DNA from: Asterias rubens
Taxonomy: Eukaryota
Length of the DNA: 64,000 bases
Reading direction: 5' to 3'
NCBI RefSeq assembly: GCF_902459465.1
Contig: NC_047074.1
Location: 3,348,001 to 3,412,000, forward strand
The translations under genes were made by a program, and so were the position numbers. The notes beneath the pieces were generated by a model, which saw only the letters and a list, made by a program, of their open reading frames with translations, was not told the origin of the DNA and did no database searches. The number at the start of each line of letters is the position of its first letter. Position 1 is the first letter of the stretch. Positions 21,701-30,369 of this stretch are shown piece by piece.

Positions 21701-22053
21701 TTGGCCCCTCCCTAGCAGATGTTGACCCCCTGTCTGAGGAGAACTCGTACCTGTTTGTTGATGACCCCACCCTGTCATTAGACAGTCCTTTCGAGTCTCT
21801 GGTTGGCCCCTCCCTCGCAGCTGATGGCTTCGCCCTGTCTGTGGAGGACCCTGCCCTGTGTGTAAATCAACCTTTGATAGAGTATCCCTGCCTGTCAATT
21901 ATTGACAGTCCCTCCTCTGTGCCCAGGTGTGGTCCTTCCCACAGCCCTGCAGACTTCTCTGAGTTTACACTGAACACACAGGGTTGTTTTGTTCCGAAAG
22001 AACCTGCACATGGAACAAGCCTATTTCAAGAGGACTCCCAGTGTTATGACTGA
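18763..22053 (+). CDS. AUNIP: Probable AUNIP (Aurora kinase A and ninein-interacting protein) orthologue, 3 exons (18763-18852, 19713-19908, 20744-22053), ~531 aa, largely low-complexity
   Basis: Exons join in frame with GT-AG boundaries. N-terminal EQCDVWL resembles AUNIP EACGVWL, KQTTLLDFF resembles HQRSIASFF, and C-terminal SLFQEDSQ resembles QLFTEDSQG (from memory). The gene model is solid; orthology is moderately supported. Confidence 0.6.
20290..20575 (+). mobile_element. Second tRNA-derived SINE family (fragments ~40515-40720, ~55990-56075)
   Basis: Degenerate B-box GTGGGTTTGAATCTCGG followed by CCCTTGAGCAAG; its 3' part is shared with 55990-56075 in reverse. Confidence 0.65.
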
Positions 22054-23006
22054 CACTAGGTGATGTGAGCATTTGTCTACCCCCACCCCCCCCCGTTCCA
22101 AAATTGTCACTTGTTTTGCTTTTGATACCCCAGTCTCCATTCTGATCATGTGCTAGTCTTATTTTTTTGTGATTCATAAACCTTAAATCAAACATTGTTA
22201 GTCTGCAAAAGTTGTTTGGATTCAGATTAATATCATCTTTTTACAATTTGTTCACAATATTCCGGTTTTAAAGAATTATTTAAAAAAAAAATTCTTGACA
22301 AGCTTCAATAAAAAAGAAGAAAATTATCAAAATTCAATTGTCCTTCCACAATCATTTCTCAATCTCCACTCGAGTGCACTCAATGTATTTCTTTCTTTCT
22401 TTTTGTTTGATAAGGGGATGTTTAAACCAGGGCTGAATGTCAAAAAGCTGTTAAGCTCCCGCTGGTCTTTTTTCGTGCGTGATATCTGGGGGTGCTGCGG
22501 CCGCGTGCGCCTTGATTTAAGGCTAGTCGTACTCGTACTGCGAACTAAGTAATCCGAAAGTGCCCTCTTTTGAATCACACTTCGGGTTGACCGAATTCCC
22601 TATAACAAAATCCAATTTAAAAGAAATGCTAATTATTATTCAAATTTATTGAGTATGGAAAGTATGGAAAATACTTAGCAGTCTCACAGCTTTTTACATT
22701 AGTGACTATTGTTCTCTGACTCTTGAATTTGTATCCACTTCTCATTAGAAATGGGGAGTCCCGCGGTGCGCCCGTCGAGTTATTCTCCCTTGTAACTATT
22801 TTCCAAACGTCCGAGGATCAATCTTGAAAATCTCCCTACACCTCTCAGCAGTATATTTTATTAAAAATATTGAAATACATCAATACATCAAGTTGGAAGT
22901 CGAAAAACCCAGAGGGCCAATTACATAAATCATGTAAGCAAAAAAAGAATGTTACGTTTCCATTGTTGTGCCACACTCAATGTTTGCTTAGCAAAGAAAT
23001 TTGTCA

Positions 23007-23506
23007 GGTGTCGCATGCAATTATGTCATCTATGCAATACTATCCGGAGGACATTATTTCATATGCAATAATGTCCGCCGGACGGTTTTGCATATGCAAT
23101 CGTGTCCGCCCGGACGCTGCTGCATAATGCATTTTGTGTCCGCCCGGACACATTTGCATATGCAGTTGTGTCCGCCCCCGTGCAAAACCGTCCTTGTAGT
23201 AAATTAAACACCCTTGGCCGACGGAACACGTTCGCCATATGATTTTTTTTACAAGCTGAGTGCATGTTATGAATGACATGGCAAATATTCGGCCGTTGGG
23301 TATCGCTGCAATCATTAATACATGAATAATTCATGCTGCATAATACGTAGGTTCAGTGCATGCACGCTCGCTTACGCGCGCACATACGTGTACAGTCATG
23401 TACATGTCCACCGGACGGTTTTTGCATAGCCCCGGACACGATTGCATATGCAAAAGTGTCCGGAGCGGACAGTATTGCACGGGCGGACACAATTGCATCT
23501 GACACC
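23007..23506 (+). mobile_element. TIR element with internal arrays of TTGCATATGCAA and GTCCGCCCGGAC, upstream of ferritin
   Basis: Imperfect ~24-bp TIR GGTGTCGCATGCAATTATGTC / GACACAATTGCATCTGACACC; second copy at 62159-62573. Confidence 0.85.
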
Positions 23507-24096
23507 GGCAATTATATGAAATTGAGCCTATCAGGTCACAACATTGGTCAAAATGTTTACACTGTATGTTGGAGCTCTCAAATCTGTCTAGATAAGAATT
23601 ATGTTGAGTGTCGATGCTCTGTGCACAGGGCACCGGAACTCGGTTGAAACATGACTCTCTGTCAGTGTCTGGATGACACAGGATACGTTCTTATTACACT
23701 TTCCCCAAAGGTGACAATACCAAACGGGCTTAATACTTCGTTGCCTGGATGTTCGACACCATTACAATTATCAAGATCCCCAAAAAGTTCTGAAGAAATC
23801 GCGTAAAGTTATGGTATTATCATTGTATGGCCAAACCAATGCTTTTCTCCTTAGCCAATTTAAATAGTCTTGAACAGAATGATGGAGAAGTTGAGTGTAG
23901 AGTTGCAATTATACATACCAGACCCAAAGAAAAACATTCACTGTTCCCGGGGAGTAAGTAACAAAGGGATAACAGCTTCCCAGATTGGTATAAATGTTTT
24001 TGTTGCATATTATTTCTACCCACTTAAAATATTATTACTAGTCAGATCAGAGACTTTGCATTGAAACTTATTGGAAAAGGTTCACTATAGACCAAG

Positions 24097-26443
24097 ATGC
24101 AAGAAGTCCGTAATAATATCATTAGACAGAATTACCATGAGGAGAGTGAGGCTGCCATCAACAGGCAGCTCAACCTGACGATGTACGCATCTTACACGTA
24201 CTTATCAATGGTAAGCTGTCTGTTTTCTTTTCTTTTTTTGCGATGCCCCGATCCTGTCAGATTTACACGGCTGCCCCACCACTAAACTCCACCTCCCATA
24301 AACTCCAAAAGGGAAATGTATATACTATTTGTTTTCTCATCAAATAAATTTTCAGATAGAAATATTTCAAGGGATGTCCTCTGTCATCATCATTAGACCG
24401 TGTAAGTTGTAATGTCATGATCTTAGAGTTTTGTTTCTTACCAATTTCATATACGTTTGTTGTGTTGTCATATATACCTCGAGAAAGGTTTTGCTAGGGG
24501 CAAAACGTCAGACCATAAACTATTTTATGCCTGATAGGAGTATTTTTACTTGCTGGGGAAACAAGAGTGCGTTATCAAACGATTTACCAGCACAACTCGT
24601 CGACGGGTAGAACCACTGGGTGTGTGTGGGGGGGGGGGGGGGGAAGTCACAAAGTTCCAGAAGTGGGCACCGGACGCGGCGACCCGTGGGCTTTTGAAGG
24701 GTGTATGGTTGACCATAGCCTTTTCGAATTAACGGCTTCGGCTCCGGACTCGGCTCAGGCTAGCTTGGCCCCGCAGTTATTTTGAAAATTGCGCGTGTTT
24801 TGCGTACGTGCTCAGGGCTTCAGACTAGAAACCTGAAGCTGAATTCAAAGATGAAGCCGTGCATTCGAAAAGGGTATAGCATGCATTTATAATAATTTAT
24901 ACAATCAACATTAAATTAAGATATGGTTTTCCCAACAATAGTCGGCATATTTCGGCAGAGCCGACATCGCCGTTCCATGTGCACATGAGTTCTTCAAGAG
25001 GGCACACGAAGAGGAGCAGGCCCACTTGTGGAAGCTGATCAAATTTCAGAACATGCGAGGAGGCGTTGTTGGTCTGCAGGACGTCGTGAAACCAGACAGA
25101 GACGAATGGGGATCCCTCCTGGAGGCAATCGGGAAGTCACTGGAGCTCGAGAAACAAGTCAACCAATCACTGCTGGATCTTCATGCGATTGCAGACAGAC
25201 ATGGTGACGCACAGGTAGGCCTACGTCACGTGTCACGTGCAAACCTTGTTCAGTTTGCTGCTGACTAGCCTGTACATCTGACGTCACATTTCGAAACGCG
25301 TGAATCACGCCAGAGATCTACCATTGAGCCTACGTCAATCCCCACCCACATCACCTTTCATCAACATTTGTATAACATGGAGAATCGAATAACAAGACGT
25401 ATAGAAACAATATTACATGAAAGTACATTATACTGTACTTATACACAGCGCGCACTGCACCAACCGAAAGTGATTTCTGTCCATATTGTTGTCAGCTGCA
25501 CCCATGTCACCTCGGACCACCAAACACAGATATGGAATGCTTACGTTACTGTATGTTTTATCCGCAATCATTGTATCGAATGAAATCACTGGTTCTGATC
25601 ATTATGTCTTTATTATCCGCGGAGACTATTCTAGCCAATGATGGTCCACATCCCCCAATCCCATTTGAACCGGGGTGAAAGGCAGTGAAAGAAAACGGGA
25701 TTATCAAAACTTTTGTTATATTTTTCTTCTGATCGTACCACACCCACTGCGGTGGGCTTCACCAATAATGCCCGCATGCGACGAAAACAACGTTGTAAGA
25801 GTACACATCAAACGATAAAAAAAGAGCGGCCATTAAAAGGGTTTGCCTTCAAATCTCTCAAGATGTTCTGTTTGGAATTACTCCTTATCTTTTTCTGTGG
25901 GCACGTTTGGTGATTGTCGAAGACCAATTTATTTAAACTTGGTGTTTCCCAACAAAATAAAAAATAAAAGGGGAAATTTGGGCTCAATATTTGTCATAGA
26001 GGTTGAAATAAAATAATGAGAGAAAAACATCCTTCTTGCATAATAATTGGCTTCATGCCTGAAGTAGTGAGAAATAACCCCTTTCTCTTCTTCGGAGGGA
26101 GCCATGTCTTATACTACAACAGCTCTCCATTGCCAATTAACTTTTTTAAGCTTGCAATTATTGTGAGATATTACTAATAATGTCCGGTGCCTTTGCAACT
26201 GTTCTTCATCCCTTATGAAATAATAAACAATTGTGGCTTTACTCTCGTTCGTAGATGTGCGAGTGGATTGGAGCGAACTTTCTGACCAATCAAGTGCTGA
26301 CCATCCAAGAGCTTGGAAATCACATCACTCAGCTTGGCCGGGTGGGTGCTGGTCTTGGAGAGTACATCTACGACAAGGAATCGCTGTGTAACCCACAGTG
26401 TTTGTGTGTCCGCCGCCAACCCCCTAAATGTACATGCAAATAA
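24097..26443 (+). CDS. Divergent ferritin subunit, 3 exons (24097-24210, 24942-25214, 26255-26443), 191 aa
   Basis: [54 protein letters not shown] and [10 protein letters not shown] are typical of animal ferritins. Introns are phase 0 and GT-AG. Confidence 0.95.
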
Positions 26444-26879
26444 TTATTGTCCATCTCCTCACAAACGGGTATAGACTTGTGGACAAGTCGTTATTGGTCT
26501 GTCGCGGTTAGATAATCGAGTCGTGAAAGTGGCATAATAAGACTCCAAGATGCTCTCGCGCGAAACTGCTGGCTGCCGACTGAAATGAGACTGCGCGAGA
26601 TCAGTAGTCTCGCGGGAATGTCGCGGGAGTCGCAGAGACAGTCAGATCGCTATCACCTCGACATACGCCTTGTCCACAAGTCTTTAAACGGATACAGCTC
26701 TTTTATAAGAGTTAACTATTAATGCACAAAACACGTGGGCTGCAAGTGAGTAGTGATAATATAAAAATAACAAAATAAAAGAACACAAGGTCCGCCAATT
26801 TATAACATTCATGTTTGTTTTTGTTACATGGCTTTTAAAACATTGGGTTTTTATTGCATTTATGGGTGACACAACACCC

Positions 26880-27157
26880 TTAAAGATTCTGTACACTATT
26901 GGTAATTGTCAAAGACCAGTCCTCTCACTTGGTGTATCTGAATATAATGCATAAATAACAAACCTGTGAAAAGTTTGAGCTCATTTGGTCGTCGAAGTTG
27001 CGAGAATGAAAGAAAAAACATCCTTACGAAGTTGTGTGCTTTCATATGCTTGATTTCGAGACCTCAAATTCTAACCCGATGTCTGGAAATCAAATTCGTG
27101 GAAAATTACTTCTTTCTCGAAAACTACGTTACTTCAGAGGGAGCCGTTTCTCACAAT
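26880..27157 (-). mobile_element. T2-type MITE family A, truncated
   Basis: TTAAAGATTCTGTACACTATTGGTAATTGTCAAAGACC plus the shared body. Confidence 0.75.
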
Positions 27158-27434
27158 ATAGAGTCTTGCTGGGTAGTCTCCTAAGACCCCCACTGTGAAC
27201 TGAGACAAAAGTCTTGGGTAGTAGTCTTCAACGACCCATAGTGTTAAATGAGACATGAGTCTATGGTAGTCTCCTTACAATCAGTGAACTTAGATAAGGC
27301 ACAAGACCCGAGTAAATAAAAACAAACAAAACAAAAAGATTCCACAAAACTTGATCACATTTCAATCCTTCCTGTACGTGGTTTATTTCAGTGTTAACAA
27401 AAAAATCATGACATAGATATTAAAATTACTGTAA

Positions 27435-27625
27435 AGGCCCGGTCACACAGGCCCCGATAACGAGAACGAAAACGAGAACGATAAAAATGCACGCTCGCAA
27501 TTGGTTGAATTGATCCACGCAGAATACGCCCACGCTCATTCAACCAATCGAGGGCGTGCATTTGTATCGTTATCGTTTTCGTTCTCGTTTAAGTTCTCTT
27601 TATCGGGGCCTGTGTGACCGGGCCT
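27435..27625. mobile_element. PIF/Harbinger-type palindromic MITE with TAA target duplication
   Basis: TAA-AGGCCCGGTCACACAGGCCCCGATAA...TTATCGGGGCCTGTGTGACCGGGCCT-TAA. Confidence 0.9.
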
Positions 27626-30369
27626 TAACACTTCTACTGTTGGCAATATGTTCCAATGTACACAGTGGCACAGCTGAGCAAAGACATAACTGTGCACACG
27701 TATGTACTGTAAGCATTCATTACACATTGTGTCATTTTGCAGGCTGGCATAGTTTATCTATCATTCAAAACCATACTGTATTATACTGAAGGGTCTAACA
27801 GTAGGAAGGTTAACATTGTAACCAGTCAATTATATTCATTTATAAATGCAAATTAATTTTCCTTTTTATGCATTATTTATAATTGTTTAAAATCAACACC
27901 AAGTCTTTGAGTTTTTTTAGTTTTATGTTTCTTCGCGGGCACAACGCAAATCATAAAAAAACTATTTGTCATTTGTATACAATATTTGGTGATTTACTTT
28001 TATCTAGTCATATGCTACACTTCCGTGACCATAAATCTATGAAAAGCCGACAACATGGTTTGATTAACTTGATGTGTGGATTCCTTTATGTACCATCCTT
28101 TACAAGCTACAAAATATTTGGTGTTGAATTGTTTTTCAATGGAATGCGGTGAATTAATTGTGGGGTTCTTGTTGAAATTGAACTGTCTGAAGAGTTGTAA
28201 GACGTGTGACTTAAACTACAAAATATGTGAATTTTTTGTATAAAAGCTAATAACATCGATCTATAAAAAAGATTTCTTTCACTGATTTTCGACCGTTCTT
28301 AAACAATCACTGACTATTTGCAACCAGCAAAAAGTAAAACCATCATATCACCTTGTGCGGATTCCGATTTGTACACCTGGATGAAGAGAAGCAATTCATG
28401 CGTGACTAAAGCTTGTTCAATAACACTACAGTGGTTAAGCTTTAACCTCAATACTATCAATCAGTTCTAAAACCTTGACAACATTTTATTCCAATAGATG
28501 GTCATAACCAACGTTTGTTGATGGTGAAATTGACTAGCATCAAGATGCTCGTTTTAGCTTGTAATGACAATATCGCATGATTGGCAATAGAGCATTTTTG
28601 AATAGTTTCTGTAGGGCATTAAAACTGTAGCTTTCCATTACACTGATGCATGGATTACCAAACTTCAAAGCTTCTTTGTTTCATCTTACATGAACATCCA
28701 TTCAGAATTAATAATACAAATAACTATTAAAACATTTTTTTTTTAAGAAAAGAAAATGGTACCCCCGATAACATTGTTAAATGTTTCTTGCTTAAAACCT
28801 TCATGTGTTGAGAATAAATATCCAAGCACCATTCTTTTGTAATCATCATTCGTAATAAATAAGTTATACACAATATATCTAGTTAAAACAATTGTCGCTA
28901 AATGATAAAATCATCAAAATTTCACATGATACAGTTGTTCAGTATTCAACCTACAGCTTATGGTTATCTTAAATTAGAATAAAACTTGTCAAATTGAAAA
29001 CAGAAACTTAAATTTCAAAAGGCTCTAAAGACTGACACGTTTGAATTTACATTTTTTTTATTTTATTTTTTTTTTTAAGTAGCACATAAAGTCCCTATCA
29101 GTTAGTTGAAAGGAAAACTTACAAGGGACAACAACACAATCCTAAAACAGATCTATCAGAATAAAACAAAAATTGAAGGAAAGATTATCCATTCACTACC
29201 CAACTTTCATCAAGATAAATCAATCTTTTCTGATTAATAATCAACATTAAATTGTTTATTTCATACCTGTTTGTTTAATAGATAGTCAGTTTACTAAAAC
29301 AAATTGATTTTGAACGAAAAAGCAGCTACAAAACAAAAACAGTCAATCTACATTCAAATGTTTTTTGGTTTTACCCACACATTGATGTGTGTAATCACTC
29401 TAAACTCATACTTTCCAGGTTTCTGTAAAAAAAAAGAATACCCATAAATTCATATTAATTGGATGAGATTCGAACCCATCAACATCCTCCTTTATAAGCG
29501 GCGGTGGCTATAATATGAGAATAGGGTGTTTCTATGGCAGATGCCTTACATGTGCGGACTTGTACACAGATTATGACCGGTAGCCTGAATCTTACATTAA
29601 GGCAGCGGGTACTGCAAAAATTTAAAATGTTGTTTGTTTCTTCTCACAAAAACAGGAAATTGAAATACACACAATAATATAAAATTATGTATCCTAAATG
29701 CAAGTCTAAAATCTACTAAATACGCACAAAAATAATAAAACGATTAAAGTATATACCAAACCATCCGTCAACATAAGTGAATTCTTGCCTAAAACCTTTT
29801 CTGTTTTGATAATTAATTATCAAAACATCAATCTTGTAATCCCATTCATTTATTTAACTTTCCTAATCTATACCTTTAAATACAATTTTAAAAATAAGTT
29901 TAAAAAGAAATAAATGATATTTACAACTAAACCATGCAGTAATTATCTCTTCGCAAATTTCAAATTTTAAGTCATGCTTAATGACAAAAACTGTCCATTT
30001 GTTTTGATTCAAAACAATACTTTTATTTCAAGTTCATCCAACAGGATTCTAAAAGCTGCATCAAATATGTACAGTTGCAGCAGCCTTTATGCATGTTTTG
30101 GGGGGGTATAAAATAATATGTTAATTATAATTTATAGTTACGTGTTGTATCTTGCAGGACTATTTTATCTTGGAGAATGCCACGATGATACCAACAAGAT
30201 CAGTTGTTGGAAAATTCAGGGGAAGATTTTGCTTCATTTTTTTCGCAGTAAAATTTGTAAACTGGGTATACTTTTTTAGTTTCAAACATTGCTTTTTGAG
30301 TACTGACTGATGCATAATGTGTAGCATTTAGCAAGGGAAATAAGGTGTTCGGTTCAACCATGGAGGAAG

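Follow-up and report, generated by a model that had tools for sequence, protein, structure and literature searches.

Ferritins that lack an iron-responsive element (IRE) and whose function is unknown are widespread in invertebrates (Adameyko et al. 2021, PMC8395497). These atypical ferritins, among them Halisarca HdF2 and Acanthaster planci ApF1 (PMC8395497), have no signal peptide, carry replacements of key iron residues, lack an IRE and lie on long branches bordering the cluster of ordinary ferritins. A gene of the sea star Asterias rubens, located in the 64,000-nucleotide stretch of contig NC_047074.1 analysed here (the window), shares these features: its product has no signal peptide and has replaced key residues, and the gene has no IRE and sits on a long branch. 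No Cys-rich extension of the C-terminus, such as the Asterias protein has, is described for any of the atypical ferritins (PMC8395497). ApF1 has lost E27, E61, E62 and H65, whereas the Asterias protein keeps E61, E62, H65, E107 and Q141, which makes it a distinct case or one less degraded. The ordinary sea-star ferritin, represented by AfFer of Asterias forbesi (PDB 8iqv family, PMC10647799), belongs to the sister clade and has the same fold, the same length up to ...DKExL and about 60% identity; AfFer-like proteins, however, possess E27, D131, E134 and E140 and end three residues after ...ExL.

Several better studied systems resemble the Asterias protein in single respects. Vertebrate L-chain ferritin has a disabled ferroxidase centre and works in heteropolymers, a state mimicked by a Glu62Lys allele of the Asterias gene. 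L chains, however, gain nucleation carboxylates, whereas the Asterias protein loses E64 and E67, adds a thiol tail and has an independent, sea-star origin. A natural, lineage-specific C-terminal extension of 18 residues affects stability and iron handling in BfrB of Mycobacterium tuberculosis (PMC3072985), but this extension is bacterial, is not Cys-rich, lies packed onto the shell close to the 3-fold channel and raises ferroxidase activity. In HFt-LBT, a 17-residue metal-binding tag with a 3-residue spacer was engineered onto the C-terminus of H ferritin, where it prolongs helix E and remains flexible in the lumen of an intact cage, leaving assembly undisturbed (PMC6089422); the construct is man-made, and its ligands are carboxylates for lanthanides, not thiols. 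Metallothioneins share with the Asterias tail its composition (about 28% Cys, with CxC motifs) but not homology. Their metal-cluster domains hold 9–11 Cys against five in the tail, so a metal cluster would need several tails together. Our literature search yielded no paper that deals with the Asterias protein or with ferritin tails that are naturally rich in Cys.

Gene structure and transcription

The gene consists of three exons on the forward strand (24097–24210, 24942–25214 and 26255–26443) and encodes a product of 191 amino acids. Its translation matches RefSeq XP_033637606.1 ("soma ferritin-like", Asterias rubens) residue for residue, and the protein is thus already known as a prediction. 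The coding part of exon 1, delimited by alignments and transcript contigs, begins with the ATG at 24097 and covers residues 1–38 with helix A; it is followed by intron 1 (24211–24941, GT..AG), which contains repeated elements and a G16 run. Exon 2 encodes residues 39–129 with helices B and C, as indicated by Pfam PF00210, PDB alignments and comparison with the consensus, and intron 2 (25215–26254) again has GT..AG borders. The ferritin body of exon 3 (26255–26386; residues 130–173, helices D and E, from alignments and AlphaFold2) continues into an 18-codon tail (26387–26440) of TG-rich DNA and a TAA stop codon (26441–26443) identical in Asterias amurensis. Exon 2 alone matches the ferritin domain PF00210 with 57.7 bits (Pfam cut-off 24.5), and PDB ferritins match at E=1e-30, the closest solved structures being invertebrate ferritins. 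The AlphaFold2 prediction has a mean pLDDT of 89 and intact helices A–E (15–42, 52–76, 97–124, 128–159 and 163–173), so that the four-helix bundle and the short helix E are retained in the model, while the tail is predicted to be disordered (pLDDT below 50 for residues 177–191). The N-terminal 14 residues are polar, and no signal peptide is present.

Transcripts of two RNA runs, X2 and X10, reproduce the exon borders of the gene model and continue without splicing across the tail and into the 3'UTR. A spliced X10 contig of 1026 nt covers 24041–24209, 24941–25212 and 26253–26832, and X2 contigs span all three exons at a word depth of about 265–430. Contigs of both runs display the junction 24209/24941 and the joint 25212–26253 with GT..AG, and extend in the 3' direction to 26832 (X10) and 26902 (X2). 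Positions 26296–26415 are covered by X2 contigs free of gaps, and positions 26416–26443 by two contigs (X2 and X10) that carry four inserted letters of unlisted placement. The RNA check of the 3' exon that had been proposed from the sequence thus finds the gene spliced and transcribed together with its tail. Raw reads with at least 90% likeness to the exons were not found in X12, a 1.9-Gb RNA sample of a sister organism, which implies that expression is not ubiquitous; X3 likewise yielded no contigs on the exons at this likeness. In X2, a G>A substitution at 25014 (depth 265.7 of 265.7) converts the GAG codon of the bridging ferroxidase ligand Glu62 (25014–25016) to AAG, coding for Lys. That one transcript contig carries this Glu62Lys allele suggests that constraint on the ferroxidase centre has been lost.

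A motif scan places a TATAAA box at 23989–23994, about 50 nt upstream of where the observed transcript begins, and its distance to the ATG is equal in A. rubens and A. amurensis. The 5'UTR, of which 56 nt are seen (24041–24096, from the beginning of the X10 contig), contains no CAGTG loop, and no IRE was matched by Rfam at E<=1 in 22000–28500. A second A. rubens ferritin, tried as a positive control for the IRE search, was also found without the element; it is a divergent paralogue with E61K and hence not a valid control. Two core matches to metal-response elements about 660 nt upstream in A. rubens are at chance level and have no counterpart in the corresponding A. amurensis region; no conserved metal-response element was found near the promoter in the comparison of the two species. 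The 3'UTR (26444–26832) contains an AATAAA signal at 26774 and a segment (26470–26686) enclosed between 22-nt inverted repeats.

Residue replacements along the iron route

We aligned the protein with a set of 243 ferritin sequences and with solved ferritins. The Thr of the NLTMY motif (ACG, 24178–24180) aligns with Glu27 in NLELY of human H ferritin. Glu27 is a site-A Fe ligand, and 211 of the 243 ferritins have Glu in this column; the A. amurensis orthologue also has Thr. Both kinds of alignment agree with the sequence-only reading in the loss of Glu27, in the retention of Tyr34, Glu61, Glu62, His65, Glu107 and Gln141, and in the replacements of D131 by E (codon 26261–26263), E134 by G (26270–26272) and E140 by N (26288–26290). 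None of the four replacement residues at positions 27, 131, 134 and 140 is a common alternative among the 243 ferritins. T27, G134 and N140 occur in no other correctly aligned member of the set except the A. amurensis orthologue, and E134 and E140 are conserved in at least 96% of other ferritins. The earlier list of changes was incomplete: 25 near-invariant positions (at least 85% agreement among ferritins) are replaced, so that E64A, E67W and about 20 further consensus positions have to be added to it.

The roles of E27, E62, H65, E107, Q141, D131, E134 and E140 have been described (PMC8886333). The set forming the ferroxidase centre (E27, Y34, E62, H65, E107, Q141) is incomplete in the Asterias protein, with Thr in place of E27 and the other five residues present, and the acidic 3-fold channel (D131, E134) and the transit residue E140 are not preserved, being E, G and N. 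The proposal of a ferroxidase-poor subunit is therefore sustained in part: the changes at E27, D131, E134 and E140 fit poor ferroxidase activity and poor iron uptake, but E61, E62, H65, E107 and Q141 remain, and with them some ferroxidase activity may persist. The further suggestion that the subunit assists nucleation is unlikely, because the lumen carboxylates that would characterise an L-type nucleating subunit are lost (E64 is A and E67 is W) rather than gained.

Conservation and origin of the cysteine tail

After the usual ending ...DKESL the protein continues for 18 residues with five Cys and two CxC motifs. The gene model, alignments and transcripts together confirm what was first noticed in the letters of the locus, namely a ferritin that has lost Glu27 and carries a five-Cys tail. 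Usual ferritin tails extend 0–5 residues after ...ExL in the set of 243 sequences, and only the A. rubens protein and its A. amurensis orthologue have at least two Cys beyond this end. Among stop-free stretches of 18 codons in the window, 0.18% encode at least five Cys; those that contain two CxC motifs as well make up 0.10%. The composition of the tail is thus unusual for random sequence; but TG is locally abundant in the DNA, and the tail was singled out because of its cysteines. The description of the tail as metallothionein-like holds for composition, with its five Cys and CxC motifs, but not for homology, since Pfam gives no match to a metallothionein family at E<=1 in exon 3 including the tail. 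With five Cys in 18 residues, the tail also falls below the at least nine Cys of a self-sufficient metallothionein cluster domain.

The A. amurensis orthologue has 191 amino acids, is 93% identical and shares Thr27, G134, N140 and all five Cys. The conservation of Thr27 and of the tail, which had been put forward as a check, is thereby seen in a second species; an orthologue ending at ESL and a lack of expression, named in advance as grounds against the observation, were both looked for, and instead the orthologue reads on through the tail and the gene is expressed. The tails of the two species differ by V to D, T to S and one silent change. Purifying selection acts on the gene as a whole (dN/dS 0.385, different from neutrality at p=0.037); for the tail alone, three substitutions in 54 nt leave no power to show selection and yield an omega of about 0.5. 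The divergence of the tail equals the neutral rate, against 5–8% in introns and UTRs, and from this divergence we estimate a probability of about 0.4 that all five Cys would be kept between the two species under neutrality.

A further orthologue, 79% identical, was found in assembly GCA_014845345.1, where exon 2 only is present on a contig of 1149 nt. It forms a clade with the two Asterias genes with 100/99 support and a stem of 0.44; this clade is sister to the ordinary sea-star ferritins, and the gene lies on a long branch. Above 64% identity, the full-protein query returned the A. amurensis / A. rubens cluster and nothing else. Exon 3, used to scan metagenomes, recovered only ordinary ferritins at 50–66% identity, one of which, followed to its end, finishes with ...DKEELQG. 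Evidence of the tail comes from a single genus, from two species of Asterias. It probably arose from a former TG-rich 3' sequence, because TGT codons supply its cysteines. TG slippage with read-through, which the sequence-only reading had offered as an alternative, is credible as the origin of the tail, but not as an artefact of assembly or haplotype, as the second species shares the tail; a read-through, if it is the origin, predates the split of A. rubens and A. amurensis.

Possible functions of the tailed ferritin

We favour, with a probability of roughly 0.4, the reading that the gene encodes a non-catalytic cage subunit with a thiol-lined lumen that would serve in soft-metal binding or redox buffering, and that it represents an atypical ferritin paralogue restricted to asteriids. 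Such an expressed, IRE-less paralogue would still fold as a normal ferritin subunit, while its iron route appears degraded at independent points: the 3-fold entry pore (D131E/E134G), the transit residue (E140N), site A (E27T) and the lumen (E64A/E67W). Ferritin C-termini normally point into the cage lumen, and the tail, which directly follows helix E, would by homology project into the lumen around the 4-fold axes. A homo-24-mer, if it assembles, would place 120 thiols inside the cage, about 20 of them clustered at each 4-fold axis, and the subunit might act alone or co-assembled with ordinary Asterias ferritin. Reduced lumen thiols would then bind Cu, Zn or Cd or buffer redox chemistry instead of nucleating iron oxide. 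That the subunits assemble into cages, that the tail lies in the lumen, that ferroxidase function is lost and that metals are bound is inferred; the metal-binding reading of the tail is plausible. A bolder form, a functional hybrid of ferritin and metallothionein, we consider rather unlikely: here a lumen with up to 120 Cys thiols would hold Cu, Zn, Cd or metal-sulfur clusters instead of iron oxide, the hybrid having evolved in asteriids from a ferritin duplicate whose iron route was disabled and which gained a ligand tail from former 3'UTR sequence.

The tail might also be a neutral passenger on a functional atypical ferritin, an explanation that we hold about as probable as the preferred one. 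A gain of 2 nt or a loss of the stop codon would have opened the TG-rich 3'UTR to translation, and the extension would have been fixed before the species split and tolerated as a disordered peptide in an empty lumen. Deletion of 2 nt after CTG gives an in-frame TAA, 41% of random read-throughs in the window reach at least 18 codons, and Cys encoded by TGT in TG-rich low-complexity DNA is what accidental read-through predicts. Divergence at the neutral rate, the omega of about 0.5 drawn from three changes and the disorder in the AlphaFold2 prediction point the same way, and an engineered C-terminal tag of similar length is tolerated in the lumen (PMC6089422). Against this stand the rarity of five or more Cys in random stop-free stretches of 18 codons (just 0.18%), the five Cys and the frame kept intact in both species and in transcripts, and the location of the tail on a paralogue remodelled at many functional sites, yet under purifying selection.

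Less probable are readings in which the cysteines serve neither as metal store nor as passenger. Disulfides between subunits or a redox switch at the inner opening of the 4-fold channels could lock or gate the cage or alter co-assembly. Cys174 directly follows the helix at 163–173, so that four copies would meet at each 4-fold axis, going by ferritin architecture (PMC8886333), and in M. tuberculosis BfrB the natural 18-residue extension makes the cage more stable and influences iron oxidation (PMC3072985); a protein without a signal peptide is, however, expected in the cytosol, whose reducing conditions make stable disulfides unlikely, and we regard this role as improbable. S-acylation or prenylation of the C-terminal Cys cluster, which would bind the protein to membranes, has slim chances. 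The composition of a basic, Cys-rich C-terminus ending in CxCK (…KCTCK) in both species speaks for it, but this end is not a CaaX box and does not match the terminal CxC/CC motif of Rab proteins. A lipid anchor would also need an outward "flop" helix E or an unassembled subunit, whereas C-terminal extensions of H ferritin have been seen, in the "flip" state, within the cage (PMC6089422). For a faulty assembly or annotation, or a frameshift private to the sequenced individual, nothing speaks but the general error-proneness of TG repeats. The frame and the tail recur in the independent A. amurensis genome, and the transcript contigs, gap-free in X2 over 26296–26415, continue in X2 and X10 to the 3'UTR (with the four inserted letters); an artefact is thereby effectively refuted.

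If the tail is neutral, what remains is a further atypical ferritin that RefSeq already contains as a prediction. The gene is probably a clean, recent example of a remodelled paralogue on which TG-rich 3' sequence became coding. Non-iron nanoparticles are grown in ferritin cages whose cavities have been given engineered cysteines, and a natural thiol-lined ferritin, if this is what the Asterias gene encodes, would mean that evolution has explored the same design. The preferred reading of a thiol-lined, non-catalytic subunit would, if true, point to a concrete role of an atypical invertebrate ferritin (PMC8395497).

Gene structure and transcripts

The ferritin gene lies on the + strand in three exons (24097-24210, 24942-25214 and 26255-26443) separated by two GT..AG introns, and its 576-nt reading frame encodes a protein of 191 aa with a 100% match to RefSeq XP_033637606.1, "soma ferritin-like [Asterias rubens]". 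Along its whole length, each of the three exons aligns with animal ferritins of solved structure, exon 2 by itself exceeds the Pfam ferritin cut-off (57.7 bits against 24.5), and tblastn found no second ferritin-like gene in the window. Exon 2 with its intron flanks (24846-25433) is matched at 97% identity by a 579-nt marine contig (ENA metagenome ERZ23498486, SOLA22-1 scaffold_2302160), which shows that an environmental metagenome assembly contains Asterias DNA. Intron 1 contains a G16 homopolymer after (GT)n (~24620-24645) and two segments, 24302-24418 and 24653-24886, that every run covers at very high contig depth, as dispersed repeats would be.

The 3' exon proposed by the sequence-only reading is transcribed, and the tail is contiguous in transcript contigs of runs X2 and X10. 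A spliced X10 contig of 1026 nt covers 24041-24209, 24941-25212 and 26253-26832; X2 contigs span both exon junctions with the same borders, at a word depth of ~265-430 on the exons, and cover the tail region by 26296-26415, gap-free, and 26386-26902. Both contigs over 26416-26443 carry four extra letters each, unlocated within ~520-580 nt, and the four substitutions of the X2 contig all fall in the 3'UTR. No splicing that removes the tail was found in the X2 and X10 transcript contigs. The sister-organism runs X12 and X3 show no exon coverage, so expression is not ubiquitous.

A. amurensis shares the TATAAA box at 23989 (+), and an AATAAA signal lies 3' of the coding end at 26774 (+). No conserved metal-response element was found near the promoter, and an iron-responsive element (IRE) is absent both from the 56 nt of 5'UTR seen and from Rfam matches at E<=1 in 22000-28500. 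Upstream of the gene, a near-perfect hairpin of ~50-100 nt (22989-23088) gives weak sub-threshold Rfam matches to the unrelated families mir-8186 and sau-5971 and is probably a palindromic repeat. Within the 3'UTR, a 217-nt segment (26470-26686) bounded by 22-nt inverted repeats (26470-26491 and 26665-26686, 91% complementary) looks like a MITE-like insertion; positions 26492-26551 are skipped by one X2 contig and one X10 contig. Right after the 3'UTR begins an extremely repeated element (26876-27100), probably of a SINE- or MITE-like family, for which each of the four runs gives a summed contig depth of 10^5 to 10^6; it also has thousands of raw RNA reads, and many variable joints and loose ends.

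Replaced residues and phylogenetic placement

Human H-chain numbers are used for single residues, and the Asterias protein's own count for Cys174, helices and residue ranges; as far as the start of exon 3, exon 2 included, the offset between the two is +1. In a sea-cucumber ferritin structure, ferroxidase site A consists of E27, E62 and H65, the 3-fold entry channel has rings made up of D131 and E134, and E140 is a transit site from the channel to the ferroxidase centre (PMC8886333). The Asterias protein has Thr (ACG, 24178-24180) at position 27, reading NLTMY against NLELY in human H ferritin, and replaces D131 by E, E134 by G and E140 by N, while Y34, E61, E62, H65, E107 and Q141 are retained. 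Across an alignment of 243 sequences, the usual residue is present in 211 (E27), 197 (D131), 207 (E134) and 197 (E140), and among correctly aligned sequences T27, G134 and N140 occur exclusively in the Asterias protein and its A. amurensis orthologue. The codon and the alignments thus bear out every residue named by the sequence-only reading, whose list was incomplete: 25 positions with at least 85% agreement among 102 other full-length ferritins are replaced, including the lumen-facing carboxylates E64 (to A) and E67 (to W), as well as D42G, D44A, G50C, S59H, R63Q and R79V.

A deeper orthologue, on a contig of assembly GCA_014845345.1 that holds exon 2 only, shows 79% identity in that exon and has C50, E53, H59, Q63, W67 and I70 as derived states in common with the Asterias gene; no further close relatives were found in the protein collection or metagenomes. 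Together with the tail-bearing proteins it forms a clade (support 100/99) on a long stem (0.44), whose sister (92/88) is a group that includes a second divergent paralogue of Asterias as well as the ordinary, AfFer-like ferritin of sea stars. By this placement, the gene is a sea-star-specific duplication with a later burst of change. The second paralogue, of 169 aa, is found in A. rubens (LR699113.1, locus L004 3001-5065; XP_033645836.1) and A. amurensis (locus L005; XP_071809568.1), which by our count differ at ~11/169 residues; it carries E61K, E64H and E67M, and L004 1800-5600 yielded no IRE. Asterias thus has at least three ferritin types.

Selection on the gene

The A. amurensis orthologue (XP_071798336.1, 191 aa, 93% identity) carries Thr27, G134 and N140 and ends in the tail CNPQCLCDRRQPPKCSCK, with all five Cys retained. 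Alignment of the window with the A. amurensis locus gives substitution divergences of 5.2-8.2% in introns, 4.7-8.5% in flanks, 5.6-6.7% in UTRs and 2.6-4.6% in coding exons; the tail differs at 3/54 nt (5.6%) and is indel-free. By the Nei-Gojobori method, the whole gene has dN 0.0295, dS 0.0766 and omega 0.385 (p=0.037 against neutrality), and the body has omega 0.37. The gene is under purifying selection, weaker than the very strong constraint expected for an ordinary ferritin.

An X2 contig, the only one over that part of exon 2, has G>A at 25014 (GAG to AAG, Glu62 to Lys; depth 265.7/265.7) and also G>C at 24972 (Val48Leu). Lys, the L-chain state, here takes the place of the bridging ferroxidase ligand. 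The change looks like a segregating allele that would disable the ferroxidase centre further; if it is a true allele, this centre would no longer be protected by selection.

The cysteine-rich C-terminal tail

The claimed Cys-rich extension is present in frame: 18 further codons follow the ...D(K/R)ExL position and end at TAA, against 0-5 residues in ordinary relatives (e.g. ...ESLGES, ...ETLGDD). No other ferritin in the 243-sequence alignment has at least two Cys in the post-ExL region, and the tail is so far confined to one genus. Its description as metallothionein-like holds for composition only, Pfam giving no metallothionein family for exon 3. An AlphaFold2 run with 104 aligned ferritins (mean pLDDT 89, pTM 0.83) keeps helices A-E intact, with helix E at 163-173 immediately followed by Cys174, the first tail Cys, and pLDDT below 50 for residues 177-191. 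By homology, helix E would point inward at the 4-fold axis, and an engineered 17-residue tag with a 3-residue spacer on the H ferritin C-terminus lies inside the cavity of an intact cage (cryo-EM, PMC6089422). The tail might accordingly be lumenal, with four tails clustering at each 4-fold axis.

An artefact as the source of the tail is effectively excluded. In our main reading (probability about 0.4), the protein is a putative non-catalytic cage subunit whose reduced thiols may line the lumen, binding soft metals or buffering redox chemistry. Equal weight is given to a rival in which read-through into TG-rich 3' sequence produced the tail by accident and the tail is tolerated. The tail DNA is TG-rich, its cysteine codons being TGT or TGC, and read-through of at least 18 codons is common in the window (41%); at least five Cys occur in 0.18% of all stop-free 18-codon stretches there. 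Conservation of Thr27 and the five-Cys tail holds in A. amurensis, but selection on the tail itself is not discernible: with two non-synonymous changes and one synonymous (omega 0.48), it is indistinguishable from neutral sequence, and we estimate the probability of chance retention of all five Cys at this divergence at ~0.4. Minor alternatives are lipid anchoring via the tail and a gating role at the 4-fold axes through disulfides or redox chemistry. With the nucleating carboxylates E64 and E67 replaced, the suggested assistance to nucleation is unlikely.

The sequence-only reading is confirmed in its observation and supported in part in its interpretation. The gene belongs to the "atypical" invertebrate ferritins, IRE-less proteins of long branches, replaced key residues and unknown function, tabulated for Acanthaster and Strongylocentrotus (PMC8395497). 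Unlike these, the Asterias gene adds a Cys-rich C-terminal extension, for which no precedent was found in sequences or literature. This extension is what is new in the gene, and the idea of a thiol-lined ferritin cage is both testable and attractive.
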